Shown here in pieces: positions 9,979-32,013 of a stretch of 64,000 nucleotides of DNA. A program made the position numbers and the translations under genes. Every line of letters starts with the position of its first letter. The first letter of the stretch is position 1. Under the pieces are notes generated by a model. The model worked only from the letters and a program-made list of their open reading frames with translations. It did no database searches and was not told where the DNA came from. The DNA lies in sequence record MZ443783.1; one strand, given 5' to 3'.

Positions 9979-10509
9979 ATGACGGAAAAGATTGAACAGT
10001 TGGCGAAGTGGTATGACGCGGCAAAGACCGCGTTTAAGATGGGCACTCTCAATCCTAACGGTAACATTGCGTTGCTGTTGAGTATTCTGGCCCGTCTGAA
10101 TAAGTCAGTAGACGAAGCCGCTCCTGGTCCTGTGCGTGATCAGGCAGAAAAGGAACGTGCTGAGTTTCTTGACGAGCTGGCTGGTGAGGTCGATATGTAC
10201 GAACTCATTCGCAAGCGCTTCAACAACGATCTGTACCCAGGCATTACTGTGAGTGAAGACGTGAAGGTGTATGTTGCCCTCATGTCTGATCGCCCAGGCA
10301 GTGCTGTAATGGCGATGACCTTCCTGCACCTTGCACGTTGCTACACGCTCAAAGACATGATCATTAACTTTCTCCCGAACGGCTTCCCAGCTGAGGACGC
10401 ACTTGGCCTCACTTGGAGCATACAGAAGACAGACACCGGAAACCTGGTGGATGATATTGATTCTGTAAATAGCCTGTACAATAAGATGTATAACTCTGGA
10501 GATAAGTAA
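9979..10509 (+). CDS. hypothetical protein
   Basis: 176-aa ORF, AGAGG RBS. Confidence 0.65.
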   Translation: MTEKIEQLAKWYDAAKTAFKMGTLNPNGNIALLLSILARLNKSVDEAAPGPVRDQAEKERAEFLDELAGEVDMYELIRKRFNNDLYPGITVSEDVKVYVALMSDRPGSAVMAMTFLHLARCYTLKDMIINFLPNGFPAEDALGLTWSIQKTDTGNLVDDIDSVNSLYNKMYNSGDK

Positions 10510-11102
10510 TGGATTTATCTGCATTAGGTTACGCACCGAAGCAGTTCCGAGTAATCCCCGTTGAGAAGGGCAACCTCGTGACTGACTTCATTCAAGGTAA
10601 GTTCCGCGTTATCGGCGTTGAGTGCAACGCTCGTGGTGCTTACGGAAGCCCGATTCAAAAGAGTATTGCCCGTCGTTTCCCTGAAGTCGTGAACCGCGTC
10701 AACGCCGTTGATTACGAACACGAATTAACAATCGGTAAGACGCATTTGGTTCGCGTTCGCACACAAGCCCGTCGTGATTTGTTTGTTGCTAACATGCACA
10801 TTGCGCGTGGCTTTGGTCTGGGTCTGAATGGTTCGTCTGAGGGTCATCATAAGCCCGTTAACCGTTTCAGTGAAAAGTTCCTGACGCGGGCGTTTGAACA
10901 TCTGCTGGAGCAGTGCGATAAAGAAAACATCGCACCAGACCGACAGATTGCTATTCAGCGTTTCTATGGCGGACTCGGCGGAGTTTCTTGGGAAGAGGTT
11001 TGTGTTGTGCTCGATGCTATCTGTGAGAAGCACCAGTTCAACATGTATGCCTACTTGCCAAAGAACTACAATACTAACTACGTGCGGGGTTCCGCGCAAT
11101 AA
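10509..11102 (+). CDS. macrodomain (ADP-ribose binding/hydrolase, Poa1p/DarG-like)
   Basis: KGNLVTD, VECNARGAYGSPIQKSIARRFP, VANMH, IAIQRFYGGLGGVSW (cf. IAxPxIGxGxGGxxW). Confidence 0.7.
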   Translation: MDLSALGYAPKQFRVIPVEKGNLVTDFIQGKFRVIGVECNARGAYGSPIQKSIARRFPEVVNRVNAVDYEHELTIGKTHLVRVRTQARRDLFVANMHIARGFGLGLNGSSEGHHKPVNRFSEKFLTRAFEHLLEQCDKENIAPDRQIAIQRFYGGLGGVSWEEVCVVLDAICEKHQFNMYAYLPKNYNTNYVRGSAQ

Positions 11103-11117
11103 CTCTGGGGTGTATTG

Positions 11118-11450
11118 ATGAACACAATACGCGGATTTGATTGGCTCTTTTACGGAGATGGAACCGATAGTGGCCAACACTCAATTGTAAGTCTTGTTGT
11201 CGATCAGACAGCAAAATCAATACAGGTAGAAGTAGAGCCAGGATGCGCCGTACCTGTAATTCAAGCGATTCAGGAAAATGATGTCCTGTACGCTCAGGCC
11301 GAGGCTGGCCTTTATCGTATTCGTTACAGTTGCTCATTCCGAACGTTGGATGCTAACGTCTTCCCGCCCACCAAGACTAACTTCCAGTTGAAGTTGATCG
11401 CGTGTGACTTCCTTGCGGGTGTTACTACTCACGATAAACTTCTGGACTAA
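11118..11450 (+). CDS. hypothetical protein
   Basis: Packed ORF. Confidence 0.6.
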   Translation: MNTIRGFDWLFYGDGTDSGQHSIVSLVVDQTAKSIQVEVEPGCAVPVIQAIQENDVLYAQAEAGLYRIRYSCSFRTLDANVFPPTKTNFQLKLIACDFLAGVTTHDKLLD

Positions 11451-11455
11451 GCACT

Positions 11456-12214
11456 ATGATTACAGTAAAGAATATTGAACTGCGTTTGAAAAGAATAGAC
11501 TATACTCGGCCATCACCGACCCGTGAACGGCTTGAGGAACTTGTGGCTGATGGACGTTCACGTATCTTGAAGTCGGCGCAGATTGATGGACTGTGTCCTG
11601 AATCTGATCGTTACTTTGAGTTCTGCCTGTCGCAAGTTGGTTCATTCTGCACTGCATCATACAACGCTGTGGAGATCGCTCTCTGCATCGGTCTGCAACC
11701 TATCCACGTTGCTGCCGCTATCAGCGTTCACGGTTTCGAATGGTCGCATCGTCTTCTTGGTTTGAAGCGATTCGCTACCCTCGATCGTGGTGGCTTTACC
11801 GTCTGGAAATCTGCTGACTCTTGGTTCTCGTTATGCGAAGCGCAGCGTCGAGCTACTGCCGTGCGTGGCGATCAGGTTATCTCTACTGGTCAGTCTAAGC
11901 TGCGTCAGGCTGTACGCAACGGCGACATGGCCAAGATACTTGAGATTGCTCAATCGCATCCCCATCGCATGATGAGCATTCTCGATGTACGCAAAGAGCT
12001 TTATAGTGACCCGCGTTTGGAGAAGTCTAAGCGCGAACGCGAAGCCAAGAAAAAAGAACTGGCTGCCGAAGGTAAGAAGTTAGCTGAACGCGGTTCGTAC
12101 AACGATCTTGGTACTGTATTCAACGGGCCAATTACCAAACCAGATCGCACTCGTGGTATTGATGATTCTTCTCAAACACGAAGTACGGTTAGTGGTCGTC
12201 GTTTTCGTGTCTGA
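11456..12214 (+). CDS. hypothetical protein, basic C-terminus
   Basis: 252-aa ORF. Confidence 0.65.
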   Translation: MITVKNIELRLKRIDYTRPSPTRERLEELVADGRSRILKSAQIDGLCPESDRYFEFCLSQVGSFCTASYNAVEIALCIGLQPIHVAAAISVHGFEWSHRLLGLKRFATLDRGGFTVWKSADSWFSLCEAQRRATAVRGDQVISTGQSKLRQAVRNGDMAKILEIAQSHPHRMMSILDVRKELYSDPRLEKSKREREAKKKELAAEGKKLAERGSYNDLGTVFNGPITKPDRTRGIDDSSQTRSTVSGRRFRV

Positions 12215-12266
12215 AAAACAGATAACGGTAATTTCGACAGGTCAAAACAAATAACGGAACACTATC

Positions 12267-13037
12267 ATGAGCAACGTTGATAAAACAATGCCACAAGGTC
12301 GCTGGGAATTTAACGAACCAGTTGCTGCTGTCTTCGATAACATGTTGCAAAACTCCATTCCTTCGTATGACCGTATGCGTGACCTAACCTATCGTCTTGG
12401 TCGCCAGTTCGTAACTCCAGGTACGGCCATTGTTGATTTGGGCGCATCGCTTGGTCGCGCTATCGAACCCTTCTGCGCTGAGTTTGGTGAGTACCATTAT
12501 ATTCATGCTGCTGACCGCCCTGAGCCAGACCGTGAAATCGGCAATCATTATTGCTGTTATGAAGTCGCACCTGCAATGCTTGAGCGTCTTCGTCAAAACG
12601 AAGTGCTGGTCAACGCCAAAGCGAAAATCAGTAGTGAGTCGCTGGTTGAAGTCGATACTTTCCGCTTCGACGAGCAGGTTGAGTGCTCCCTGATTTTGAG
12701 TGTGCTGACTCTCCAGTTCACTCCTATCGAACATCGCCAACACATTCTGGAGAAAGTGTACGACTCTCTGGAGAAAGGCGGTGCTTTCATTCTGGTTGAG
12801 AAAGTGTTGGGTGACGACAACTTCCTTGACCGTTTGCTGGTAGACACCTACTACGGCATGAAGGGCGACAACGGTTATTCGCAGGAATCTATTGCGACTA
12901 AGCGCAAAGCTCTCGAAGGCGTACTGGTGCCTGTGAAAGCTGCATGGAACGAAGAACTGCTGCGTAAAGCAGGCTTCAACCGTGTGGAGTGTTTCTACCG
13001 CGACCTGAACTTTGCTGGATGGATCGCAGTCAAATAA
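12267..13037 (+). CDS. cmoA: CmoA-like carboxy-S-adenosylmethionine synthase
   Basis: WEFNEPVAAVFDNMLQNSIPSY, VDLGASLG, TLQF, GGAFILVEK, KGDNGYS, KRKALEGV (Arg equivalent to E. coli CmoA R199), AGF, LNF; colinear with E. coli CmoA as recalled. Confidence 0.88.
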   Translation: MSNVDKTMPQGRWEFNEPVAAVFDNMLQNSIPSYDRMRDLTYRLGRQFVTPGTAIVDLGASLGRAIEPFCAEFGEYHYIHAADRPEPDREIGNHYCCYEVAPAMLERLRQNEVLVNAKAKISSESLVEVDTFRFDEQVECSLILSVLTLQFTPIEHRQHILEKVYDSLEKGGAFILVEKVLGDDNFLDRLLVDTYYGMKGDNGYSQESIATKRKALEGVLVPVKAAWNEELLRKAGFNRVECFYRDLNFAGWIAVK

Positions 13038-13048
13038 GGTAAAACGAA

Positions 13049-14095
13049 ATGAGCGTAAGTGGTGATATTTATAACATCCCTCAACCGTTCGCCATGTATT
13101 GTGGCAACTGTGAAACTCGTGCTCAGGCAAAAGTTGCCTCAGGCACAATCGAATGGGCGTCAGAGAAAGTCTGCTGCGTTGTTGCCGACGATAACGGCCT
13201 GTTCCCTGATGTGCCTCACGTCAACATCGCAAGCGTCCATGCCACAGATGCACGTACTCTGGTAATTGGCTGTGCACCGTTCGGCGGTAAGATTGACGAG
13301 CACATGGACCGCACTATTCGCAGTGCTATCTATCGTGGTCTGAACGTTGCTGCCGCGATGCACAATCGCCTGGCCGATAATCCTGAATACGTTGCGCTGG
13401 CCGAACAGTATAACGTCAAGCTGTATGACTTCCGTCATCGTCCTGACGCGTACCCTCTCGGTACTGGTGAGAAGCGCAAAGGCATTCGTCTGCTGACTGT
13501 AGGTACCGATAGCTCTTGCGGTAAGAAGTTCACGACGCTGACGCTGCACCGCATCCTGAAAGAGATTCACGAAGACACCGTGTTCTGCTCAACTGGCCAG
13601 ACTGGTTTCCTGATCAGCAACTGTGGTATCAACAACGATACGCTGGTGGCCGATTTCCTTGCTGGCGCTGCTGAGTCTTTATCGCCTGATGGTCCTGATG
13701 ATCGTATCTATCTGATTGAAGGCCAGGGTGCTATTACTCACCCAGCGTATACTGGTGGCAGCATGAGCCTGATTGCTGGCTCGCAGCCTGACTACTTCAT
13801 CATGTGTCATGCGTGGGGCCGTAAGAATCAGCTCGGTGTTAAACGCGCACCTGACCTTGCTTTTGAACTAAAGGCCAATCTGGACGCAGCGGCCATTCAC
13901 GGTCTTACTCCTAAGTATCTAGGCATCAGTATCAACTTCTCCGAGAGTGGCCTGACCCTCGAAGAACAAGACGCTGAGATGTGCGCCCTGGAGGACCTGT
14001 ACGATATTCCAGTGTTCGACCCATCGCGTGATCGTATCGTCATCAAAGAGATGGCACACCATCTCAAGACGACTGTAATATTCAGGGGCAAGTAA
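13049..14095 (+). CDS. DUF1611 family protein (DgcN-like N-acetyltransferase / P-loop)
   Basis: LVIGCAPFGG, GLNVAAAMH, RLLTVGTDSSCGKKFTT, STGQTGFLI, DFLAGAAE, LIEGQGAITHPAY. Confidence 0.85.
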   Translation: MSVSGDIYNIPQPFAMYCGNCETRAQAKVASGTIEWASEKVCCVVADDNGLFPDVPHVNIASVHATDARTLVIGCAPFGGKIDEHMDRTIRSAIYRGLNVAAAMHNRLADNPEYVALAEQYNVKLYDFRHRPDAYPLGTGEKRKGIRLLTVGTDSSCGKKFTTLTLHRILKEIHEDTVFCSTGQTGFLISNCGINNDTLVADFLAGAAESLSPDGPDDRIYLIEGQGAITHPAYTGGSMSLIAGSQPDYFIMCHAWGRKNQLGVKRAPDLAFELKANLDAAAIHGLTPKYLGISINFSESGLTLEEQDAEMCALEDLYDIPVFDPSRDRIVIKEMAHHLKTTVIFRGK

Positions 14096-14096
14096 C

Positions 14097-14966
14097 ATGG
14101 CTAAACATCCTCTTCGCAAGCTGTTTGAACAGCACGTAAAGAAAGAGGTCAAAGCCAAAGAAGTGGCCGTTCTGCTTTCGAGCGGCCTCGATGGTTTGGT
14201 TAGCGCACTCGCGGCGCACGATCTCGGCATGAAGGTACACGCCTTTACTTTTCAGATGGGCGATGACCAGAGCTTCGATAGCAAACACGCTGCAATCGTA
14301 GCCCAGAAAATGGGCTGGGAGTTCACGCTCGTTAAGGTGCCAGACTCTGATAGTGCAATCGCCAAAGGCTGGAAGACGTTGCACAAGAGTTTCCGCTGCA
14401 TCAAAAAACGTGATTACGAGTGTGCGTACCCTATGGTGTACTGCTACAAAGCGATCAAAGATGCAGGCTTGAAATACGTGCTTAGTGGTCTGGTGGCTGA
14501 CGGTTACTTCCTGTATAACCGAAACACGCACATTCAGAAAGTAAGCGGCCCGCACTCTATCGCTGAAAAGTATCACGCGTACCGCACCGAATACTTCCGA
14601 CCGTGGATCAAAAGCGGTAAGAAGTCGCTCGGCGTTGACGGCTATAACCCGAGCGGTATGCTGCAACACGAATTGCTGTGTGACCACTTCGGCCTTGTTC
14701 ACGTTAACCCGTGGATGCAGCCGAAAGTATTTGATTACTTCATCAAGTACACATGGCAAGAGTTAAATATGCCTAAGCAGAAAATGCCAATAACAACGGC
14801 TTGGGCAGATCACATCGCAGTTGTTGGACATCGTCCACATCGCGGCTATCAAACAGAAGCTGGAGTGCCTGCGCACTTCGAACGCTTACTGGATAATCCT
14901 GAGATCAACTTCAACGGCCGCAAGCGCATCATGGACGTGGCCCGCGATTGGTCAACGAGGACTTAA
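14097..14966 (+). CDS. asparagine-synthetase C-terminal-like ATP-dependent amide ligase with no glutaminase domain
   Basis: PP-loop VLLSSGLDG, HAFTF..D..HAAIVAQKMG, KYVLSGLVADGYF (cf. VLSGEGxDE), NPWMQPKV (cf. PFLDxxV). Confidence 0.78.
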   Translation: MAKHPLRKLFEQHVKKEVKAKEVAVLLSSGLDGLVSALAAHDLGMKVHAFTFQMGDDQSFDSKHAAIVAQKMGWEFTLVKVPDSDSAIAKGWKTLHKSFRCIKKRDYECAYPMVYCYKAIKDAGLKYVLSGLVADGYFLYNRNTHIQKVSGPHSIAEKYHAYRTEYFRPWIKSGKKSLGVDGYNPSGMLQHELLCDHFGLVHVNPWMQPKVFDYFIKYTWQELNMPKQKMPITTAWADHIAVVGHRPHRGYQTEAGVPAHFERLLDNPEINFNGRKRIMDVARDWSTRT

Positions 14967-14967
14967 T

Positions 14968-15582
14968 ATGTTTGTACACATCATTGACGGTGGTATTGGT
15001 GGGTCTTATGTTGCTCACCAGTTAATGGAAGCTGGGTTTAAATGTCGCGTTCACTCTCCGAATAACAATCGTGTTCGGGCAGTACACGCGCCCTACCCTT
15101 CGCTCTCTATGGGTCACACTGAACAGGAAATTGAAAAGCATATCGGTAACGTGCTTGGTACGTTTCGCGGTCTGTTCCTGATCAGTAGCTACGTTGGTTC
15201 GTTAATCGCAAATCAGATGATCGATCAATGTGGTCAGAGTGGAAACATCATCACCTGTGACGATCTCAAGTGTGGTTCAATACCTGTTGTTGCTTCATCC
15301 ATTTCTGTAAACGTCTATAAGAAGCAAAGACAACTGGCACGTATCTCGCATCGCCTGAAACACTTCGACATTGACCACGAGTTCATTGTCGCGGATAAGG
15401 CTGTGCGTTTTGCTGCTGGTTCGGAGTATGATGAGCACGATGCTCGAAAGGAGTTTAACAACAACGCCAAATTCCTTTCGAGTCCGTCAATGATTGTTGC
15501 TGCACACAAACTCGGTGTGAAGAACAGTATGTACCACAACTATGCGGGACTGGTGCGCGAGTTTCTTGAGAAGCGCCAGTAG
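14968..15582 (+). CDS. unknown; N-terminus resembles glutamate racemase (DSGxGG) or a Rossmann dinucleotide-binding motif
   Basis: MFVHIIDGGIGGSYVAHQLMEAGF; ATG 2 nt after the previous stop; racemase catalytic Cys motifs not seen. Confidence 0.6.
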   Translation: MFVHIIDGGIGGSYVAHQLMEAGFKCRVHSPNNNRVRAVHAPYPSLSMGHTEQEIEKHIGNVLGTFRGLFLISSYVGSLIANQMIDQCGQSGNIITCDDLKCGSIPVVASSISVNVYKKQRQLARISHRLKHFDIDHEFIVADKAVRFAAGSEYDEHDARKEFNNNAKFLSSPSMIVAAHKLGVKNSMYHNYAGLVREFLEKRQ

Positions 15583-15600
15583 CAGTAACGCGAGGGCACG

Positions 15601-15864
15601 ATGATTAATCGCTTTCAATTGAAGAAAGTTCCGACGCTCGAAGCGTGTCAATGGAACGGGGAGAACGTCGAGGAGATGCAGAAGTTCATCGACGGTCACG
15701 GTTATGTTGTTGGGCGTTATGTCCAGATTGGTGTGCTCGATGAATATCGCAAGCCGTCTATTGCTAACGTGTCTGTAGGCAACTACGCAGTTAAGCACGA
15801 AGACGGTCGGTTCGATGCGATGACAGCAAGCGAACTGATGGACAAATACGTTCTGGCGGATTGA
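15601..15864 (+). CDS. conserved small phage protein (EAxQWxGxN type)
   Basis: LEACQWNGENVEE motif, GAGGG RBS. Confidence 0.65.
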   Translation: MINRFQLKKVPTLEACQWNGENVEEMQKFIDGHGYVVGRYVQIGVLDEYRKPSIANVSVGNYAVKHEDGRFDAMTASELMDKYVLAD

Positions 15865-15871
15865 GGGCATA

Positions 15872-16327
15872 ATGAATCTGTTTTCTATTTTAAAGCAACA
15901 GGTAAAGAAAGCGCTGTCCACCGAAGCGAATCACGAACCAGAGATTCGTGCGTTGTTCGACTGGCGCTACTCTGTTGAGATCAAAGGCCAGATGTACATT
16001 GTCGGTAAGACTGGAGCAAACACTTGCTTCTATGTCGAGCCTGGTACTGACGAGCCGATTGCGTGTTACCCTGATGCGCTGCTGGAGAAGATTGACCAGT
16101 GGGGCGGAAGCAAGTACGTGTCATATTCGATCTTCTTTAAACGCTTCGATAGCCCAGTTGCCGAGAACATCAAAACTCTCGAAAAGGCAATGAGCGGTAA
16201 GCCCAAGTCATACAAGAAAGGCTACTTCATCTGTGGCGTGACGCCGAAAGGTAAGCGTGTGAAACTCTATCGCTTGCAACAAGGTCTGTCTGGTATGCAG
16301 TGGGTAGCTGTGGAGAAACAAGCATGA
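15872..16327 (+). CDS. hypothetical protein
   Basis: GAGGG RBS, packed. Confidence 0.65.
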   Translation: MNLFSILKQQVKKALSTEANHEPEIRALFDWRYSVEIKGQMYIVGKTGANTCFYVEPGTDEPIACYPDALLEKIDQWGGSKYVSYSIFFKRFDSPVAENIKTLEKAMSGKPKSYKKGYFICGVTPKGKRVKLYRLQQGLSGMQWVAVEKQA

Positions 16328-16533
16328 GTAAGCGCATTCAATTTCTTTTGTCCTGTAGCGCGTTTGTCTCAGGCTTGTTCTTGACTCTGGTGATCTTCGC
16401 TCTGATTGTGTTCAATGTGGTTATGGACATATCGAAGGAAGTAACCACGCCGCTGTTGATCGTTCTCGTTGTCTGTTTTATTAACAACATGTCAACGGTG
16501 TTCTTGATGCGGACCAACAACTCTAAATCGTAA
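16324..16533 (+). CDS. small two-TM membrane protein
   Basis: ATGA overlap; two hydrophobic segments. Confidence 0.6.
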   Translation: MSKRIQFLLSCSAFVSGLFLTLVIFALIVFNVVMDISKEVTTPLLIVLVVCFINNMSTVFLMRTNNSKS

Positions 16534-16562
16534 CGCGCGGTCTGTCCGTGTGAGGAGCAAGT

Positions 16563-16856
16563 ATGATTAGTGACATTACAGTCGGCCATATCTACAAGTC
16601 GCCTAGCGACAAGCCATTTATTGTTGACTGCATTGCTGCACACGGACAGGATTGCTCACTGCCTATGGTTGTCTATCGTAATCTCGAACCTACATCAGAC
16701 AGCCCTGCTAATAGCGTGTGGGTAATCCCAGAATCGTTGTTTGTGATGCAGTTCTCTGAGTACGAATCAGGAGAGCACCATGAACACAACGAGCTTGTAT
16801 CGTCATCTGGAATCAAGGGGATTTGCTCCTTCTTCCTATCACTGTTGGCTAAGTGA
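16563..16856 (+). CDS. DUF1653-like small beta-barrel protein
   Basis: GHIYKS..FIVDCIA..MVVYRNL..VWVIPESLF; GAGGAG RBS. Confidence 0.6.
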   Translation: MISDITVGHIYKSPSDKPFIVDCIAAHGQDCSLPMVVYRNLEPTSDSPANSVWVIPESLFVMQFSEYESGEHHEHNELVSSSGIKGICSFFLSLLAK

Positions 16857-17296
16857 AACGCAAATGACCGTGCCGCTGTTTGGCTTTGATAGAGCTATGC
16901 GCGGTCTACAGGTCTACACGCCAGATGCACCAAAGCACGATAAGAATCCAAAAGAGTGTCGCTACTTCACGCGAGCATTCGGTGGCAAGCAGTTGGTGTG
17001 GGGATCGGAAATTAAACCTGAACGGGTCGACCGTATTCTTAACTGAGTCTGTGTTCAAGGCGTGTGCGCTACATCGTCTTGGACTCAATGCTTGGTCCGT
17101 TCTCGGGTCTAATGTGAGTGAGCATCTGTACCATCAGCTTCGACTTCTTGGTCTACGTTTCGTCTGTCTTGGCGATAACGATAAAGCAGGACTGGAGTTT
17201 AGTCAGACGTTCGGACTAGGCGCGGTCAGTGCGGATCTTGATGAGATGACTGATGAGCAGTTGCTTGATTTAACTTTACCCTTCGTAAGGAAATAG
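16780..17296 (+). pseudogene. Toprim primase-like gene split by a +1 frameshift near 17011
   Basis: Frame A ends RYFT..LVWGSE; frame B continues LNLNGSTVFLTESVFKA..CLGDNDKAG (Toprim E and DxD). Confidence 0.65.
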
Positions 17297-18228: not shown

Positions 18229-19071
18229 ATGACAGTAATCAGCCCAATCCGATATCAGGGCAATAAGCGAAGCCTTATCCCGATTATTCTTGAGCACACG
18301 CCTTCTGTGCAGGACTGCCCTCGCATGGTGGACGTGTTTGGTGGTAGTGCTACTGTTTGCGCGAACATGCCGCAGAAGTTTCGCGTCTACAATGAACTGA
18401 GTCCGCAGGTGTACGATATCGTTAAGATGTTAGTCGAACAGGACCCGAAGAAAACTCTTGGTCAGGTCAAGCGACTGGTCAAACATTGGTGTTTGACTAA
18501 CAGCAACGAAGCGAACTACGATGCGTTTCGTACCGTCGTTCAGAAGAAGCGTACGGCTATACTGCATTACGTTGCACATCGCCACGCACACTCGAACATG
18601 TTGCGCTTCAATCAACAAGGTGTGTACAACGTAGGCTTTGGTGATCGCGGTCTGATTGGTAAGTTCGATGAACTGGAACACGAACTCACTACATTCCACA
18701 AACATATGCAGGGCGTTCACCTGACGAACATGAAGTACGGTAAGTTGCTTGGACGTTTAGGCCACCAGCTTGACTGTAACACGTTCTGCTACTTCGACCC
18801 ACCTTATTTGGCAAGCGGTGCGATGCAGTATGGTAAGTGGACCGAGCAGAATGAACGCAACCTGCTTACGACTCTGGAGCAGTTGAATCGTCGCGGCGTT
18901 CCCTGGATGTTGAGCAACGTTATCGAGCACCGTGAGTTCTCCAACGACCTGTTAAAGCGCTGGTTAAAGAAACATGCGACAACCGTGCTCTATCCAAACA
19001 AAAGCTATGCGATGAACAATGGCCAGAGCGGCTCGCATGGCACGATTGAAATTCTGGCAATGAACTATTGA
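18229..19071 (+). CDS. dam: Dam-like DNA N6-adenine methyltransferase (D12 class)
   Basis: SPIRYQGNK, VDVFGGSATV, YFDPPY, WMLSN, EIL..NY; GATC specificity not established. Confidence 0.85.
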   Translation: MTVISPIRYQGNKRSLIPIILEHTPSVQDCPRMVDVFGGSATVCANMPQKFRVYNELSPQVYDIVKMLVEQDPKKTLGQVKRLVKHWCLTNSNEANYDAFRTVVQKKRTAILHYVAHRHAHSNMLRFNQQGVYNVGFGDRGLIGKFDELEHELTTFHKHMQGVHLTNMKYGKLLGRLGHQLDCNTFCYFDPPYLASGAMQYGKWTEQNERNLLTTLEQLNRRGVPWMLSNVIEHREFSNDLLKRWLKKHATTVLYPNKSYAMNNGQSGSHGTIEILAMNY

Positions 19072-20551: not shown

Positions 20552-20939
20552 CGCCAGTGATGCAGAAGCGCGGGCGTATTATCAGAAACAACATGAACGC
20601 GCCGAAGCCACTATGCGAGAAATCTGGGCGCTGCGTGGCTGGACGATTCGCTGGGAGTGGCATAACGGTATCTGTGATGATTGTGAGTTCTTGTTCGATG
20701 AAACAGGCAAGCAGTTGTGTCCGTACCACGATGCCATTCCGCAAGAACGTGACGTATCGTACAATCTTGAGAAGCATCGCCTCAATGTGACGTACACCAA
20801 GAAATCTGTAAAATTGATTAACAAGCAAGATCCAAATCCAGTTGAAGGTAAAGCTGACACGTTACGCCAGGCTTATATCAATTGGCTGTTGGTCCTTGAG
20901 AAACAAAAAGCTGAGGAGAAAACGTGCGCTGCAATTTAA
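20529..20939 (+). CDS. hypothetical protein; start uncertain
   Basis: Packed ORF with CDDC..CPYH. Confidence 0.55.
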   Translation: MYLPLGDNASDAEARAYYQKQHERAEATMREIWALRGWTIRWEWHNGICDDCEFLFDETGKQLCPYHDAIPQERDVSYNLEKHRLNVTYTKKSVKLINKQDPNPVEGKADTLRQAYINWLLVLEKQKAEEKTCAAI

Positions 20940-21445
20940 CCGAACTACCAATGTCTGCGGAGCAGGCCGAACACATCATGGCGAGTGTGTTTACTCTGGC
21001 CGGTGCTTCTAAATCCAAGCGCCGTGCGACTGCTGCAATGCTCATTCATTTTCATGACGGCTTCCCTACTATTATCAGTAGCGGTGTCAACGGTACTATG
21101 CCCGGCGAAAGCAACGTCATGGAAACTCCTGACCTGACTCTCTCGCTCAACACTGTTATCCATGCAGAGGTGAACTGCCTCAATCGCATGGAAGAATACA
21201 GTCTGTGGGCAAACGAACAGGACATTCTGTTCTGCACTGATTCGCCGTGTCCTAACTGCTTGGCGGATCTCGAAGCCGAAGGTGTGAAGACCGTTGTGTA
21301 TGCGCGTGAGTATCGCCTGACTGATCATCTGGACGCATCTTCGATTAAGATGTTCTGTCTGGATATGAAGTCCGTTGAGCACCGTATGCTTCGCGGTATC
21401 GAGCGCATGAACGAAGTTATCGCAACAACACCAGCGTCTGAATAA
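20924..21445 (+). CDS. dCMP deaminase
   Basis: SSGVNG, VIHAEVN, TDSPCPNC, VVYAREY. Confidence 0.85.
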   Translation: MRCNLTELPMSAEQAEHIMASVFTLAGASKSKRRATAAMLIHFHDGFPTIISSGVNGTMPGESNVMETPDLTLSLNTVIHAEVNCLNRMEEYSLWANEQDILFCTDSPCPNCLADLEAEGVKTVVYAREYRLTDHLDASSIKMFCLDMKSVEHRMLRGIERMNEVIATTPASE

Positions 21446-25820: not shown

Positions 25821-26124
25821 CCTGCTGGTAAAGATGTTCGGCCAGAACAAGCCATTCATCGTCGTGCGCCGTGACGCTATCGTGGAGAACGAAAAGCGTT
25901 TTGGTGATCGCGTTTACTTCTCTAATGGCGTTAACACCGTCACTGTGCCAAACATTCAAGGGCTTGACCTGGGTGATAAGCTCTACATTGCAGAAGACGG
26001 CGATGTGTATGAGTGGCATCCGCACTTCGAGCGCCCTTACGAAGCAGTATCGAACAACCAGACAGAAGCTCTGGCGTTTGGTCTGCATCCCATTGTCTTC
26101 CACACCGACACACGGAACAGCTAA
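25780..26124 (+). CDS. hypothetical protein
   Basis: Packed, coupled to thyA. Confidence 0.55.
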   Translation: MPTPVILLKQQTRDLLVKMFGQNKPFIVVRRDAIVENEKRFGDRVYFSNGVNTVTVPNIQGLDLGDKLYIAEDGDVYEWHPHFERPYEAVSNNQTEALAFGLHPIVFHTDTRNS

Positions 26125-27221
26125 TGTCACAACCACTTGATTTACGAAACCCGAACCACTACGAACTGTACTCTCTCCATAGCGTGGACGAGCAGTATAT
26201 CAACCTGTGCGATGCAATCATTGCTACTGGTACGCAAGAGTCCGATGCTGGTCGCACCGACGATACGTGGACGACTCTGATTGGCGTTGGCTTCCAGTTG
26301 CAGAACACGCACATTGCTTTCCCTGCGTTGCTATCCGCACGTAAGAACTGGAGCGCAGCCGTCGATGAGATGTGCTGGATGGCTCGCGGTGAAACGAACA
26401 TCAACACTCTCGGCTCTAAGATCTGGGACGAGTGGGCAGATGAAAGCGGTGAGTGCGGTCCAATCTATGGCGAGATGTGGCGCCGTTGGCCTGACATTAA
26501 AGCGTTCTTCGACTACACGCAGCCTATGGCGTCTTGCCCTACTGCCGATGTTATTCGTGTGCGTGACGAAATCCTGCGTATGCGTCAGGACGGCTATATC
26601 GAAACGCAACTGACTGACGGTCGCATCCTGTTTGAAGGTGAGATTGACCAGTTCGCTAACGCTCTGTATCACATTGAAAACCGTTCGCGTTCTCGCCGCA
26701 TTCGTGTGCAGGGTTTCAACCCAAGCTATGTGAACATGCAGGGTCTTCCTCCGTGTCACACTGAGTTTGAGTTCAACGTAACGAAGTCCACCAAGTACGA
26801 ACAGGCGCAGGCCGATGCCCGCGGTCAGACGGTAGCGCAGGACAGTCTGCATATCACTGTCACCATGCGCAGCAACGACTGCCTGCTTGGGCGTCCTTTC
26901 AACATCATCGGTTACAGTGCGATGCACCAACTGATTGCGAAGTGGGCTGGCCTGAACGTTGGCGGCTTTACGCTGAATACGACGAACACGCACCTGTACG
27001 ATCATCACCGTGAAGCATACGCCAAACAGCGTGAGCAGTGGATGACGTTGCGCGAGCGTATGCAAACAACTGGCGAGCCTGTGAAATATCCTGTGCTCGA
27101 AATCTCCGATGATGTTATCGGTCTGACAGCTAAAGAACTGCTGGACAACGTTAACATCGACTGGTTCGAGCTGGTGGACTACAGCCCGCTGCCAGCAGTA
27201 AAAGGACGTGTGACCAAATGA
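26124..27221 (+). CDS. thyA: thymidylate synthase
   Basis: EMCW, IWDEWAD, GPIYG, SRR, LPPCH, RSNDCLLGRPFNI, HLYDHH. Confidence 0.9.
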   Translation: MSQPLDLRNPNHYELYSLHSVDEQYINLCDAIIATGTQESDAGRTDDTWTTLIGVGFQLQNTHIAFPALLSARKNWSAAVDEMCWMARGETNINTLGSKIWDEWADESGECGPIYGEMWRRWPDIKAFFDYTQPMASCPTADVIRVRDEILRMRQDGYIETQLTDGRILFEGEIDQFANALYHIENRSRSRRIRVQGFNPSYVNMQGLPPCHTEFEFNVTKSTKYEQAQADARGQTVAQDSLHITVTMRSNDCLLGRPFNIIGYSAMHQLIAKWAGLNVGGFTLNTTNTHLYDHHREAYAKQREQWMTLRERMQTTGEPVKYPVLEISDDVIGLTAKELLDNVNIDWFELVDYSPLPAVKGRVTK

Positions 27222-29183: not shown

Positions 29184-29882
29184 ATGGCAAAAATTGCTAA
29201 AACAAAGGAAGGGAAAAAGAAAAGCGCGATGAAGTTTGACTTGAAAACGCTCAAGACTTCACAACTGAAAGGCGCTGACTACAACCCTCGTTTCATTACA
29301 GACAGCCGCCTGAAAGCACTCGAAAGTTCTTTGGGTAGCTTCGGCGATCTGTCTGGCATCGTCTTCAACAACAGTGTCAAAAGCGGCGTATTGATCTCTG
29401 GTCACCAGCGTCTGAAATCCATCGACGGATGGAAGACTCGCATTGAGATTCAGAAAGCCGCCGACCAACACGGTACTGTAGCTCTGGGTTATATCCACGC
29501 TACGCACCCGAAGAAAGCCGAGAAGGTCATCAGCATCCCGTTGCGTATCGTTAACTGGACTGATAAGAAAGCTGAGTACGCTGCGAACATCGCGGCGAAC
29601 GCCCACGGTGGTGAGTTCGATAACAAGAAACTCGCCAAGCTGGTGGAGAAGCTGGACTTGACCACCATCAAGCCTCAGTTGCTGGGTCTTGACCCACTTG
29701 AGATTCGCGGCCTTCAACAAAAGCTGAAAGGTCAGGCTGCGGTTGTAGCTCAAGAGCGTGTCGGTAAAACTACAGGCCAGATGAACGGTAGTAGCGGTGC
29801 GTTCAAAGAGTATGGTACGGACGAAGTAGGTGAGAGTCTGAACTGCACCTGCCCGCGCTGTGGATTTAAGTTCGAGGGATAA
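29184..29882 (+). CDS. ParB/Srx-N domain protein with a C-terminal Zn ribbon
   Basis: LKGADYNPR, GIVFN, LISGHQRL, ANIAAN..GEFD, CTCPRCGFKF. Confidence 0.8.
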   Translation: MAKIAKTKEGKKKSAMKFDLKTLKTSQLKGADYNPRFITDSRLKALESSLGSFGDLSGIVFNNSVKSGVLISGHQRLKSIDGWKTRIEIQKAADQHGTVALGYIHATHPKKAEKVISIPLRIVNWTDKKAEYAANIAANAHGGEFDNKKLAKLVEKLDLTTIKPQLLGLDPLEIRGLQQKLKGQAAVVAQERVGKTTGQMNGSSGAFKEYGTDEVGESLNCTCPRCGFKFEG

Positions 29883-29883
29883 T

Positions 29884-32013
29884 ATGATCATCAAGCCGCC
29901 TACTATGAAGGAAATCAACAAGCTGGATAAACCCTGGCGTGGTATGAGTTTCTTCGCAGGTTGCGGTGGATCTTCTACCGGTCACAAGATGGCCGGTATC
30001 AACATCCTGTTGAGTAACGAGTTCGTGGATAGTGCCCGCGAGTCTTACGAAGCAAACCATCCGACTACTAAAGTGCTGCCGCATGATATTCGTCGTCTGG
30101 ACCCAAGCAAGCTCATGCGTTATTGCGGCTTGGCGAAAGGCGAACTGGATTTACTTGACGGCAGTCCTCCGTGCTTCACCGAAGACACCATCATTCATAC
30201 AGCAGACGGCATGAAGTTCATCTCGGACATGAATGTCGGCGATCAAGCAATGACCTCTGTTGGTCGTTACTTCCCTGTGTACGATACTATGGTTCGTCCG
30301 TACGTCGGCACGATGCACAAAATCGAAACTCTGCTGGGCGCAAACAACGCTACACCAGAGCATCCGTTCTTTGTCAGACGCAGCATTCCTACTGGCGGTT
30401 ACACTGACCCGTTCTGGTGTGATGCGAAAGACGTTCAGGAAGGTGATCTGTTAGGTAGCCCACGCACTACGCCTGACATGGGACTCGACGTGTATCAGTC
30501 GCAACTCGATCAGCTGCCGAAGCAGATTGCAGAGTGGAGCACATTCCCTGAGTTCTGGTGGATGGTTGGACACTGGTGTGATCGCGGTTCGATTGAAACC
30601 GTGAGTGGTGTTGAAGTCGTTAGCTTTGAATCTCACTCAAGCCTCGAAAATGCAATGATTGAGCAGGCGTTTGACGCGCTGAAAATCAGCAGCCTGAACC
30701 GTATCGACACGATGACAGCACAACGCAAAACGTTCCGTATCGTTATGGACGCAGAGCTGGTGCAGTTCTTACGTCGATTCGTATCTCAGGGTAACAACAA
30801 GTTCTCTCGTCGTCTGCCTGCGATTGTCTTCCACCTGACAGTCGAGTTGAAGCAACAATTCATTCTCGGTTGTGCTGGTCATGACTATGTGACTGGTATG
30901 GGTACCGGCTTGGCGATCACCTCAGATAGCCGTCGCTTCCTGATTGAGTTGAACTACCTGTGCTGTTCTGCATTCAACAGACCGCTGTTCGATGGTCTGA
31001 CTTGGGGCGACGTTTACTTCGGCAGCCCGATGACTCCGCGTGATCGTAACAGTGCTAAGCCTCTCATTGGCTTCCTGTTCCTGCAGGACGAGCACAACTT
31101 CTTCCACGAGTTCGATGACGCTGACCCGCATTTGTGGGTAGAAGTGATTGAGAACCTCGCGTATCAGGCAACCTGTGACGTGTATAACTTCTCCGTTGAG
31201 ACGGACGAGACATACGTTGCAAACAGCATGGTCGTTCACAACTGCAAAGGCTTCTCTACTGCTGGTGTGAAGGAAGAAGGCTGGGGCAAGGAAGTTAAAT
31301 ACAGCGACAACAAGTATCAGCAGGTAGATGACCTGTTCGATCAGTATTGTCGTATGCTGGAAGGCATGAAGCCGAAGGTGTTCACTGCGGAAAACGTGAG
31401 CGGCCTTGTGAAAGGTGCATCGAAAGGTTACTTCCTTGAAATCATGAAGGAGTTCGATCGAATCGGTTATTACGTCCGTGCGCCTATGCTCAATGCTGCG
31501 TGGCTCGGTGTGCCGCAATCGCGTGAGCGTATAATCTTCATGGGTGTACGCAAAGATGTTGCACACGCACTTGGTTACAAGACCGCTGCGACCGCTGTGC
31601 CGAATGTTATTCCGTGTGACAGCATGGCGTTCCTTGCCGATGCTCTGCCGCACATCCTGCGCTACAAGTCCACGAAGAAAGATATCATCACCTATCTTCC
31701 TGCGATGAACGGACCGATGCCTACGATTACTGCTGCCGATGCGATTGCATATGAGACTGCACGTTTCTCGTCTGCGGGATTCGTCGAAGACAACAAAGGC
31801 CATCGCCGTAAGCTGACTATCGACGAACTCAAAGTGATATCGGGTTTGCCCTCAGACTACAAACTGAAAGGCAAATTCGAAGAACAGTGGGAACGTCTTG
31901 GTCGTATCTGTGTGCCAGCAATGACACACGCCGCCGCTAAAGCGCTCATCGAACACGTCCTGATTCCTTACGCGAAGAAACGTAAGAAGAAGCCAGGCGA
32001 TATCTTTAAGTAA
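29884..32013 (+). CDS. C5-cytosine DNA methyltransferase homologue, intein-containing; candidate carboxymethyltransferase
   Basis: Motif I FFAGCGG, motif IV GSPP/CKGFS after splicing, VI AENVSGL, VIII PQSRERIIF, IX LTIDELKVISGLP, X ERLGRICVP. Confidence 0.88.
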   Translation: MIIKPPTMKEINKLDKPWRGMSFFAGCGGSSTGHKMAGINILLSNEFVDSARESYEANHPTTKVLPHDIRRLDPSKLMRYCGLAKGELDLLDGSPPCFTEDTIIHTADGMKFISDMNVGDQAMTSVGRYFPVYDTMVRPYVGTMHKIETLLGANNATPEHPFFVRRSIPTGGYTDPFWCDAKDVQEGDLLGSPRTTPDMGLDVYQSQLDQLPKQIAEWSTFPEFWWMVGHWCDRGSIETVSGVEVVSFESHSSLENAMIEQAFDALKISSLNRIDTMTAQRKTFRIVMDAELVQFLRRFVSQGNNKFSRRLPAIVFHLTVELKQQFILGCAGHDYVTGMGTGLAITSDSRRFLIELNYLCCSAFNRPLFDGLTWGDVYFGSPMTPRDRNSAKPLIGFLFLQDEHNFFHEFDDADPHLWVEVIENLAYQATCDVYNFSVETDETYVANSMVVHNCKGFSTAGVKEEGWGKEVKYSDNKYQQVDDLFDQYCRMLEGMKPKVFTAENVSGLVKGASKGYFLEIMKEFDRIGYYVRAPMLNAAWLGVPQSRERIIFMGVRKDVAHALGYKTAATAVPNVIPCDSMAFLADALPHILRYKSTKKDIITYLPAMNGPMPTITAADAIAYETARFSSAGFVEDNKGHRRKLTIDELKVISGLPSDYKLKGKFEEQWERLGRICVPAMTHAAAKALIEHVLIPYAKKRKKKPGDIFK
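30172..31242 (+). mobile_element. intein (357 aa) with degenerate LAGLIDADG blocks
   Basis: Starts CFTEDT, ATPEHPFFV, VYNFSVE..TYVAN, ends VVHN, +1 Cys; HEN remnants WMVGHWCDRGS and FILGCAGHD. Confidence 0.92.

Follow-up and report, generated by a model that had tools for sequence, protein, structure and literature searches.

The closest described counterpart of the locus reported here is the CmoA/CmoX/CmoY pathway of Synechococcus phage S-B43 (Yang et al., Nat Commun 2025; PMC12783734). CmoA of this phage produces carboxy-S-adenosyl-L-methionine (carboxy-SAM, Cx-SAM), CmoX, a C5-methylase homolog with an SPPC catalytic motif, writes 5-carboxymethylcytosine (5cxmC) in DNA, and SpCmoY, a glutaminase-less homolog of asparagine synthetase, uses ATP to ligate glycine onto 5cxmC in DNA, with evidence from in vivo and in vitro experiments and from virion DNA (PMC12783734). 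Arg350 of SpCmoX binds the carboxylate of Cx-SAM, the R350N mutant is inactive, and ParBc proteins adjoin many CmoX genes (PMC12783734). So far the pathway has been demonstrated only in this marine cyanophage. The stretch of DNA analyzed here, hereafter the window, comprises 64,000 nucleotides of sequence record MZ443783.1 and encodes on its plus strand, at positions 14097–14966, a ligase of 289 aa that we regard as very probably a CmoY-family ATP-dependent amide ligase, which would catalyze the final step, as far as known, in a pathway that hypermodifies phage DNA. Bases 12000–16000 of the window match Erwinia phage pEa_SNUABM_28 (MZ443783.1, 267 kb) with 100% identity and unchanged coordinates; this is a jumbo phage whose nearest relatives belong to the genus Alexandravirus, for example Dickeya phage AD1 and Erwinia phage Alexandra.

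A second point of comparison is given by AsnB and human ASNS, in which adenylation of a carboxylate is followed by attack of a nitrogen nucleophile, a chemistry to which that of the ligase is likened. Several AsnB-derived adenylating enzymes have given up glutamine hydrolysis, and lasso-peptide cyclases are grouped with them. Like the ligase, β-lactam synthetase (PDB 1jgt/1mc1) and carbapenam synthetase (PDB 1q15/1q19) are AsnB-derived adenylating enzymes that have abandoned glutamine hydrolysis for an amine other than ammonia. In contrast to the ligase, which lacks the N-terminal domain altogether and has a separate DUF1611 partner, these enzymes still carry a vestigial domain of about 200 aa at the N-terminus, and the amides that they form are intramolecular ones, on small molecules or peptides.

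The ligase and its relatives

The ligase aligns collinearly over its full length with SpCmoY (UniProt A0A514ABJ0), with 33% identity in 276 aligned columns and an E of 4e-50; the coordinates of the S-B43 locus used for this comparison agree with the source data of PMC12783734. As in SpCmoY, an AsnB-type synthetase domain of about 270–290 aa stands alone without a glutaminase domain, the gene occurs together with cmoA, the same genome encodes a CmoX with the SPPC motif and the Arg, and the invariant residues of the family are kept, among them S28, G30, D32, D61, C101, K104, E108, C109, G131, D135, R163, Q228, K229, H248, R275, and R277. SpCmoY's own cluster in the sequence similarity network was drawn at 1e-56 (PMC12783734), and the ligase, at about 1e-50, probably falls outside it. 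A profile search of 1.84 billion representatives returned 1,457 relatives of the ligase, 144 of them at an E of 1e-30 or better. Five of the 150 best family representatives (P0103, P0105, P0112, P0157, and P0143) are natural fusions in which a C5 DNA methylase domain precedes or follows the CmoY-type ligase domain. Public sequencing runs contain partial relatives only, in environmental metagenomes.

The AsnB synthetase motifs listed in a preliminary description of this DNA are all present in the 289-aa product, namely the PP-loop SSGLDG at residues 28–33, VLSGLVADGYF (VLSGxxADxxF) at 128–138, and NPW at 204–206, and Pfam Asn_synthase matches residues 6–138 with an E of 2.8e-13. That description also held the protein to be devoid of an Ntn glutaminase domain, in agreement with profile matches that fall in the synthetase half only: TIGR01536 (glutamine-hydrolyzing asparagine synthetase) is matched at profile positions 235–388 of 517, and the family profile covers residues 209–453 of E. 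coli AsnB in hhalign at 97.4% probability. There is no space for an N-terminal glutaminase domain, because the preceding gene, in another frame, stops at 14095 with a TAA that is separated by one base from the ATG start of the ligase. The sequence AGGGG lies 10 nt upstream of this ATG. The ligase is under purifying selection, with a dN/dS of 0.07–0.10 relative to AD1 and pEa_SNUABM_1.

A sequence search of the PDB with the ligase returned noise only (HORMA proteins, E about 0.7), and a fold search was therefore needed. The top matches of the AlphaFold2 model (pLDDT 94.5, pTM 0.91) are the C-terminal domains of human ASNS, E. coli AsnB, β-lactam synthetase, and carbapenam synthetase, at an E of about 1e-9 and a TM by query of 0.65–0.73. 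Other PP-loop enzymes (QueC, LarE, NadE, and TtuA) match far more weakly, and an assignment to the QueC, NAD synthetase, or LarE type was rejected, as these matches are marginal (E 1e-3 to 1e-5) and involve the PP-loop region only.

With AsnB and ASNS (PDB 1ct9, 6gq3, and 8sue) the ligase shares the fold (TM by query 0.65–0.69), the PP-loop, and the SGxxxD motifs. An auxiliary metabolic asparagine synthetase that converts Asp to Asn with ammonia would fit the Pfam Asn_synthase match and the annotation 'putative asparagine synthase' found in AD1, Y3, and PaBG. The probability of such a function is close to negligible, since the protein reaches 55.5 bits against a TIGR01536 cut-off of 267.1 and scores 28.8 against 499 for PRK09431, its identity to AsnB/ASNS is 17–19% (17–18% to AsnB in structural alignment), the Glu of the AsnB motif SGEGSDE is Leu132, the Lys of the AsnB WRQKEQF loop aligns with His248, and the gene context is wholly that of DNA modification. 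Unlike AsnB and ASNS, which act on free aspartate, the ligase would by homology with SpCmoY have a base in DNA as its acceptor.

Pathway partners in the same genome

The location of the ligase in a cmoA operon, as proposed in the preliminary description, stands insofar as cmoA lies one gene upstream; the two are not direct neighbors, because a gene for a DUF1611 protein lies between them. The window CmoA matches TIGR00740 (E 9e-43, 146.7 bits versus an equivalog cut-off of 193.3) and PRK15451 (E 4e-32), in both cases under the equivalog cut-off, as well as PHROG 4752. Full-length alignments give 33% identity to E. coli CmoA (E 1e-37) and 30% to SpCmoA, whose activity has been shown by experiment (E 3e-29).

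A tblastn search with SpCmoX located the window CmoX in two pieces within one open reading frame (ORF) that matches Pfam DNA_methylase (E 1.7e-38) and starts at GTG 29860 or, more likely, at ATG 29884. The two pieces are separated by an intein whose insertion site is precisely the catalytic Cys within SPPC. The intein begins with CFTEDT and ends with VVHN before a +1 Cys, and thus shows the N-terminal Cys, a TPEH block, and the C-terminal HN followed by Cys, while its middle part resembles a degenerate LAGLIDADG endonuclease. All 43 of 43 related phage records carry this intein, with no intein-free allele among them. Removal of the intein in silico leaves a CmoX of 360 aa that aligns with SpCmoX from end to end at 36% identity (E 2e-69). 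In the spliced protein GSPPC aligns with C98 of SpCmoX, ERLGRICVP aligns with ERVGRMVPP, which contains R350, and the ENV and QSRER motifs are present.

The gene directly preceding cmoX encodes a protein whose RefSeq relatives are named 'ParB-like partition protein', and homologs of this protein immediately precede CmoX in PaBG and in four further loci (L009, L098, L099, and L110). Pfam ParBc was not detected in the window protein; its residues 19–80 align with the N-terminal part of a type II methyltransferase model in PADLOC, with an E of 4e-10.

A role in tRNA modification was considered, in which CmoA would feed the CmoB of the host and so increase cmo5U34, and a carboxymethylated uridine in tRNA would be the substrate amidated by the ligase. 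The classical role of CmoA is indeed tRNA modification, and RefSeq and PHROG label the CmoA homolog 'tRNA methyltransferase'. With E. coli CmoB as the query, no homolog was found in pEa_SNUABM_28 or in any other phage genome of the collection; the sole match, 93.5% identical, is to an unannotated Salmonella record of 3.4 kb. The phage CmoA is therefore not serving a phage tRNA pathway. As, in addition, the C5 DNA methylase homolog carries the Cx-SAM Arg, members of the ligase family are fused to DNA C5-methylase domains, and the direct experimental precedent is on DNA (PMC12783734), we judge a tRNA module to be highly improbable.

The protein is placed in the CmoY family because of its homology to SpCmoY, the pathway partners CmoA and CmoX, the ParB-like neighbor, the lack of CmoB, and the fusions. 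The preliminary description had predicted a ligase that adenylates a carboxylate and depends on an external amine, which is the chemistry demonstrated for SpCmoY, and had named a carboxymethylated base as the obvious acceptor; this second proposal gains support from the SpCmoY precedent, the SPPC motif and Arg of the window CmoX, the lack of CmoB, and the CmoX-CmoY fusions. The modified base would be cytosine, at C5, in DNA (5cxmC). In the pathway that we propose, CmoA would convert SAM and prephenate to carboxy-SAM, and CmoX, once its intein is spliced out, would carboxymethylate the cytosines of phage DNA at C5 to give 5cxmC. The ligase would then adenylate the carboxylate of 5cxmC by means of its PP-loop (SSGLDG) and SGxxAD motifs, an external amine would attack the acyl-adenylate, and the resulting amide-linked, hypermodified cytosine would shield phage DNA from host nucleases. 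Fold, motifs, homology, a complete pathway gene set, context, and selection are established here for the window, and the reaction, shown for a homolog of 33% identity, is one that we infer for its ligase.

Several observations weigh against this assignment to the CmoY pathway. The identity to SpCmoY is no more than 33%, and literature searches turned up no biochemical or mass-spectrometric data on pEa_SNUABM_28 or any Alexandravirus. The PP-loop SSGLDG departs from the canonical SGGxDS by Gly to Ser at position 2 and Ser to Gly at position 6, unlike that of SpCmoY (SGGVDS), although the variant is nonetheless conserved under purifying selection. Unlike in S-B43, cmoX lies 15 kb from the ligase gene and bears an intein, and its activity needs protein splicing. 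Finally, a free amino acid is the substrate of DgcN (D-glutamate N-acetyltransferase, EC 2.3.1.312), the characterized relative of the DUF1611 protein, and a step off the DNA is conceivable.

Such a step is central to another explanation, in which the ligase and the DUF1611 protein act on a small molecule, for example by amidating Cx-SAM before transfer or by making an amino-acid conjugate, and CmoX installs the pre-formed group. It would accord with the use of free D-glutamate by DgcN-type DUF1611 enzymes, with racemase-like genes in the cassettes of sister phages, which imply free amino-acid chemistry, and with the small-molecule substrates of AsnB relatives such as β-lactam synthetase. However, the window CmoX keeps the Arg for the Cx-SAM carboxylate whose replacement inactivates SpCmoX, and SpCmoY uses 5cxmC that is already in DNA (PMC12783734). 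The CmoX-CmoY fusions likewise favor successive action on a single DNA substrate, and we consider a small-molecule substrate quite improbable.

A DUF1611-coupled sub-clade and its variable cassette

A maximum-likelihood tree built from 101 members of the family places the ligase in a clade of 31 rows with an SH-aLRT support of 100, which is nested among the SpCmoY-like ligases. A distant group in this tree, here called type II, unites the ligases of PaBG, Y3, pEa_SNUABM_2, and pEa_SNUABM_5. The sub-clade of the window ligase appears to be restricted to phages, which fits a scan of 185,579 bacterial and archaeal species genomes in which narrow, clade-specific patterns found no relatives.

Although it shares the family invariants, the ligase is set apart from SpCmoY by residues beside the invariant His248, by position 132, and by an insertion of 13 aa. 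The preliminary description had pointed to a basic, aromatic insert that might bind DNA (residues 162–176, YRTEYFRPWIKSGKK). Its R163 and YF prove to be conserved throughout the family, whereas the segment W170–G182 is specific to the sub-clade, being missing in SpCmoY and in 66 of 66 SpCmoY-like sequences. G174 and L178 of this insertion are conserved within the sub-clade, and AlphaFold2 models it with a pLDDT above 90 at the end of helix 156–177. The clade further differs from the SpCmoY-like ligases (residue in brackets) by F60 (Y), R105 (T), L132 (W or I), R142 (K), S186 (A), N204 (T or H), R249 (I), and Y251 (L), and by G-H-R at positions 244–246, where SpCmoY-like ligases show no conservation of this kind.

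In AsnB the Glu of SGEGSDE and the Lys of the WRQKEQF loop are important active-site residues. On alignment to AsnB, L132 of the ligase falls opposite this Glu, and the GHRxHRGY block (GHRPHRGY in the window) falls opposite the WRQKEQF loop, with the invariant His248 opposite the Lys, in a local alignment that is less certain near the C-terminal end. The clade-specific positions aligned with these elements could plausibly touch the acyl-adenylate and the nucleophile, and the substitutions, together with the insertion, argue for a pocket other than that of the glycine-specific CmoY.

The second distinguishing property of the sub-clade is its partner gene. The DUF1611 protein matches Pfam DUF1611_N and DUF1611 (E 6e-46), both above their cut-offs, and reaches 280.2 bits in NCBIfam DgcN (NF041892) against an equivalog cut-off of 480; its nearest relative in the PDB is 7xrj (E 7e-52). 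Like DgcN, it has the two-domain DUF1611 architecture and the conserved GTDxxxGK, TGQTG, and IEGQG motifs, and the Walker-A-like GTDSSCGKK and other DUF1611 motifs are invariant among the phage copies. Unlike DgcN, the phage DUF1611 occurs only in cmoX/cmoY/cmoA clusters and without a DgcA-type racemase. Contexts of the ligase clade were compared in 18 distinct contigs. Besides the window, these represent nine jumbo phages related to it and eight lineages from metagenomes, which reach down to 35% identity and include the deepest branches. In all 18, the gene immediately before that of the ligase is a DUF1611 gene, and the two often overlap; DUF1611 is missing in S-B43 and upstream of SpCmoY-like ligases in each of 54 viral loci that extend 1.2 kb or more in the upstream direction. 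In the reverse direction, a search of IMG/VR with the DUF1611 alignment gave ten loci, all within cmo clusters. One of these partners is different, as locus L110 pairs DUF1611 with a type-II-like ligase, and DUF1611 is therefore not bound to one ligase clade. A compact ParB-like/CmoX/DUF1611/CmoY/CmoA cassette occurs in three unrelated viral contigs (L110:4369-8612, on a 216-kb viral contig; L098:2112-6644; L099:150-4510), and such cassettes, like the CmoX-CmoY fusions, tie the ligase to CmoX independently of the window. DUF1611 is the fastest-evolving member of the module (dN/dS 0.15–0.23), and between the window and pEa_SNUABM_1 the identity is 61% for DUF1611, 82% for CmoY, and 95% for CmoA.

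A comparison of close Erwinia and Dickeya jumbo phages reveals that the slot between cmoA and a conserved backbone ORF of 204 aa is hypervariable. The sister phages compared have flanks of about 85–95% identity and the same intein-bearing CmoX (slots in L003, L004, L014, L015, and L021). The slot holds DUF1611 and CmoY in the window, AD1, and Alexandra. In pEa_SNUABM_7 a GT4-like glycosyltransferase precedes this pair, and in pEa_SNUABM_1, 3, and 17 the cassette consists of the GT4-like glycosyltransferase, DUF1611, an alanine/serine-racemase-like protein, and CmoY. A type II CmoY stands alone in pEa_SNUABM_2 and 5, and Y3 has a third type of CmoY with an 'oxygenase'.

The distinct sub-clade, the DUF1611 pairing, and the residues of its own around the catalytic loop suggest that the attached amine is not glycine, a proposition to which we give slightly better than even odds. 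The ligase might instead be an ordinary glycine-specific CmoY ortholog that makes 5-glycylcarboxymethylcytosine as in S-B43, with DUF1611 as an unrelated passenger. SpCmoY is the closest characterized relative, the clade of the ligase is nested in the group that contains SpCmoY, and residues that bind an α-amino-acid carboxylate are retained in the largest cluster of ligases as well as in several smaller clusters (PMC12783734). A passenger gene is nevertheless difficult to reconcile with a pairing that is strict (18/18 versus 0/54), involves overlapping or abutting genes, and extends over at least 8 divergent lineages, including cassettes of four and five genes, or with the confinement of DUF1611 in IMG/VR phages to cmo clusters. 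The residues peculiar to the clade at positions that align with active-site elements of AsnB and the exchange of the cassette for other ligase types in sister phages also speak against glycine specificity of the S-B43 kind, which we regard as unlikely.

We see about an even chance that the DUF1611-CmoY pair makes an undescribed modification, in which 5cxmC is amide-linked to a group other than glycine, possibly a D-amino acid, and that DUF1611 represents a new class of hypermodification enzyme. A D-amino acid is a candidate because of the relationship to DgcN and the racemase-like genes. The DUF1611 gene holds the upstream position that corresponds to the missing glutaminase domain of AsnB. 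If the pair does make such a modification, the DUF1611 protein would be either an acyl-transfer tailoring enzyme, which may modify the appended group on a free amine or hydroxyl, or a nucleophile-delivering subunit in place of the glutaminase domain, which may supply or select the nucleophile, possibly the D-amino acid itself. The DUF1611 protein may also perform a step on a free metabolite.

If this is true, near-identical Erwinia jumbo phages could bear different DNA chemistries on a common 5cxmC handle. Sister phages with a common CmoX and differing ligase cassettes offer a natural experiment on amine specificity in the family. An enzyme of this kind was already published (December 2025), and the core of the system is hence known; new are the DUF1611-coupled CmoY sub-family, the cassette variation among near-identical Erwinia phages, and the CmoX intein. 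The strict coupling names a testable candidate component of the pathway, which is now placed in jumbo phages of plant-pathogenic Enterobacterales (Erwinia and Dickeya) and, via PaBG, also of Pseudomonas. These phages of Erwinia and Dickeya are candidates for biocontrol, and DNA hypermodification affects host range with respect to restriction and other nucleic-acid-targeting defenses as well as the sequencing and cloning of phage DNA. The family may also yield new enzymes for site-selective derivatization of DNA.

Locus layout and neighboring genes

The cmoA, DUF1611, and cmoY genes lie on one strand with intergenic gaps of 1–11 nt (Table 1). A scan of positions 11000–16600 for promoters and terminators gave no more sites than shuffled sequence, and the boundaries of the operon therefore rest on gene spacing. 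PADLOC matches neither the ligase nor the DUF1611 protein to any defense system.

Table 1. Coordinates of the cmo genes and associated features in the window
Feature	Position	Strand	Basis
cmoA, Cx-SAM synthase homolog, 256 aa	12267..13037	+	TIGR00740, PRK15451, PHROG 4752, homology to SpCmoA and E. coli CmoA
Hypervariable slot between cmoA and the 204-aa backbone ORF	13038..14967		Comparison of sister phages
DUF1611/DgcN-like P-loop protein, 348 aa	13049..14095	+	Pfam DUF1611_N and DUF1611
cmoY-type ATP-dependent amide ligase (predicted), stand-alone AsnB-type synthetase domain, 289 aa	14097..14966	+	SpCmoY homology
Sub-clade-specific 13-aa insertion W170–G182 within the ligase, WIKSGKKSLGVDG	14604..14642	+	Family alignment
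204-aa ORF, translationally coupled to cmoY, membership in the system uncertain	14968..15582	+	No recognizable family
ParB-like protein accompanying CmoX	29184..29882	+	Name of RefSeq relatives
cmoX precursor, DNA cytosine C5-carboxymethyltransferase homolog, intein-interrupted	29860..32013	+	Pfam DNA_methylase, SpCmoX homology
Intein within cmoX, 357 aa	30172..31242	+	Pfam Intein_splicing and Hint_2 (both below cut-off)

The 204-aa ORF follows three different types of CmoY in Erwinia jumbo phages and is missing from the cmo clusters of other lineages. It has no match in Pfam, NCBIfam, PHROG, PADLOC, or the PDB, and there is a weak lead to the α/β-hydrolases (score 0.88–0.90).

Between the two halves of the cmo system lie a gene for a D12-class N6-adenine DNA methyltransferase (18229–19071) and a dCMP-deaminase-like gene (20924–21445), and pEa_SNUABM_28 probably carries more than one DNA modification. 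A thymidylate-synthase homolog of 402 aa at 26013–27221, above the TIGR03284 cut-off, exceeds the usual length by about 140 aa through an N-terminal extension and internal insertions. Two ORFs at 16780–17046 and 16880–17296 overlap in different frames; the counterpart of the first is annotated 'putative DNA primase' in AD1, the second is a weak Toprim_2 match (E 0.0017), and the region 16780–17296 may represent one primase-like gene that a frameshift, whether real or a sequencing error, has divided. Upstream of cmoA, a 197-aa protein at 10509–11102 matches PHROG 335 and gave no Pfam hit at the thresholds applied; its homologs in AD1 and Y3 are annotated as O-acetyl-ADP-ribose deacetylase (macro domain), and it may be a counter-defense enzyme.

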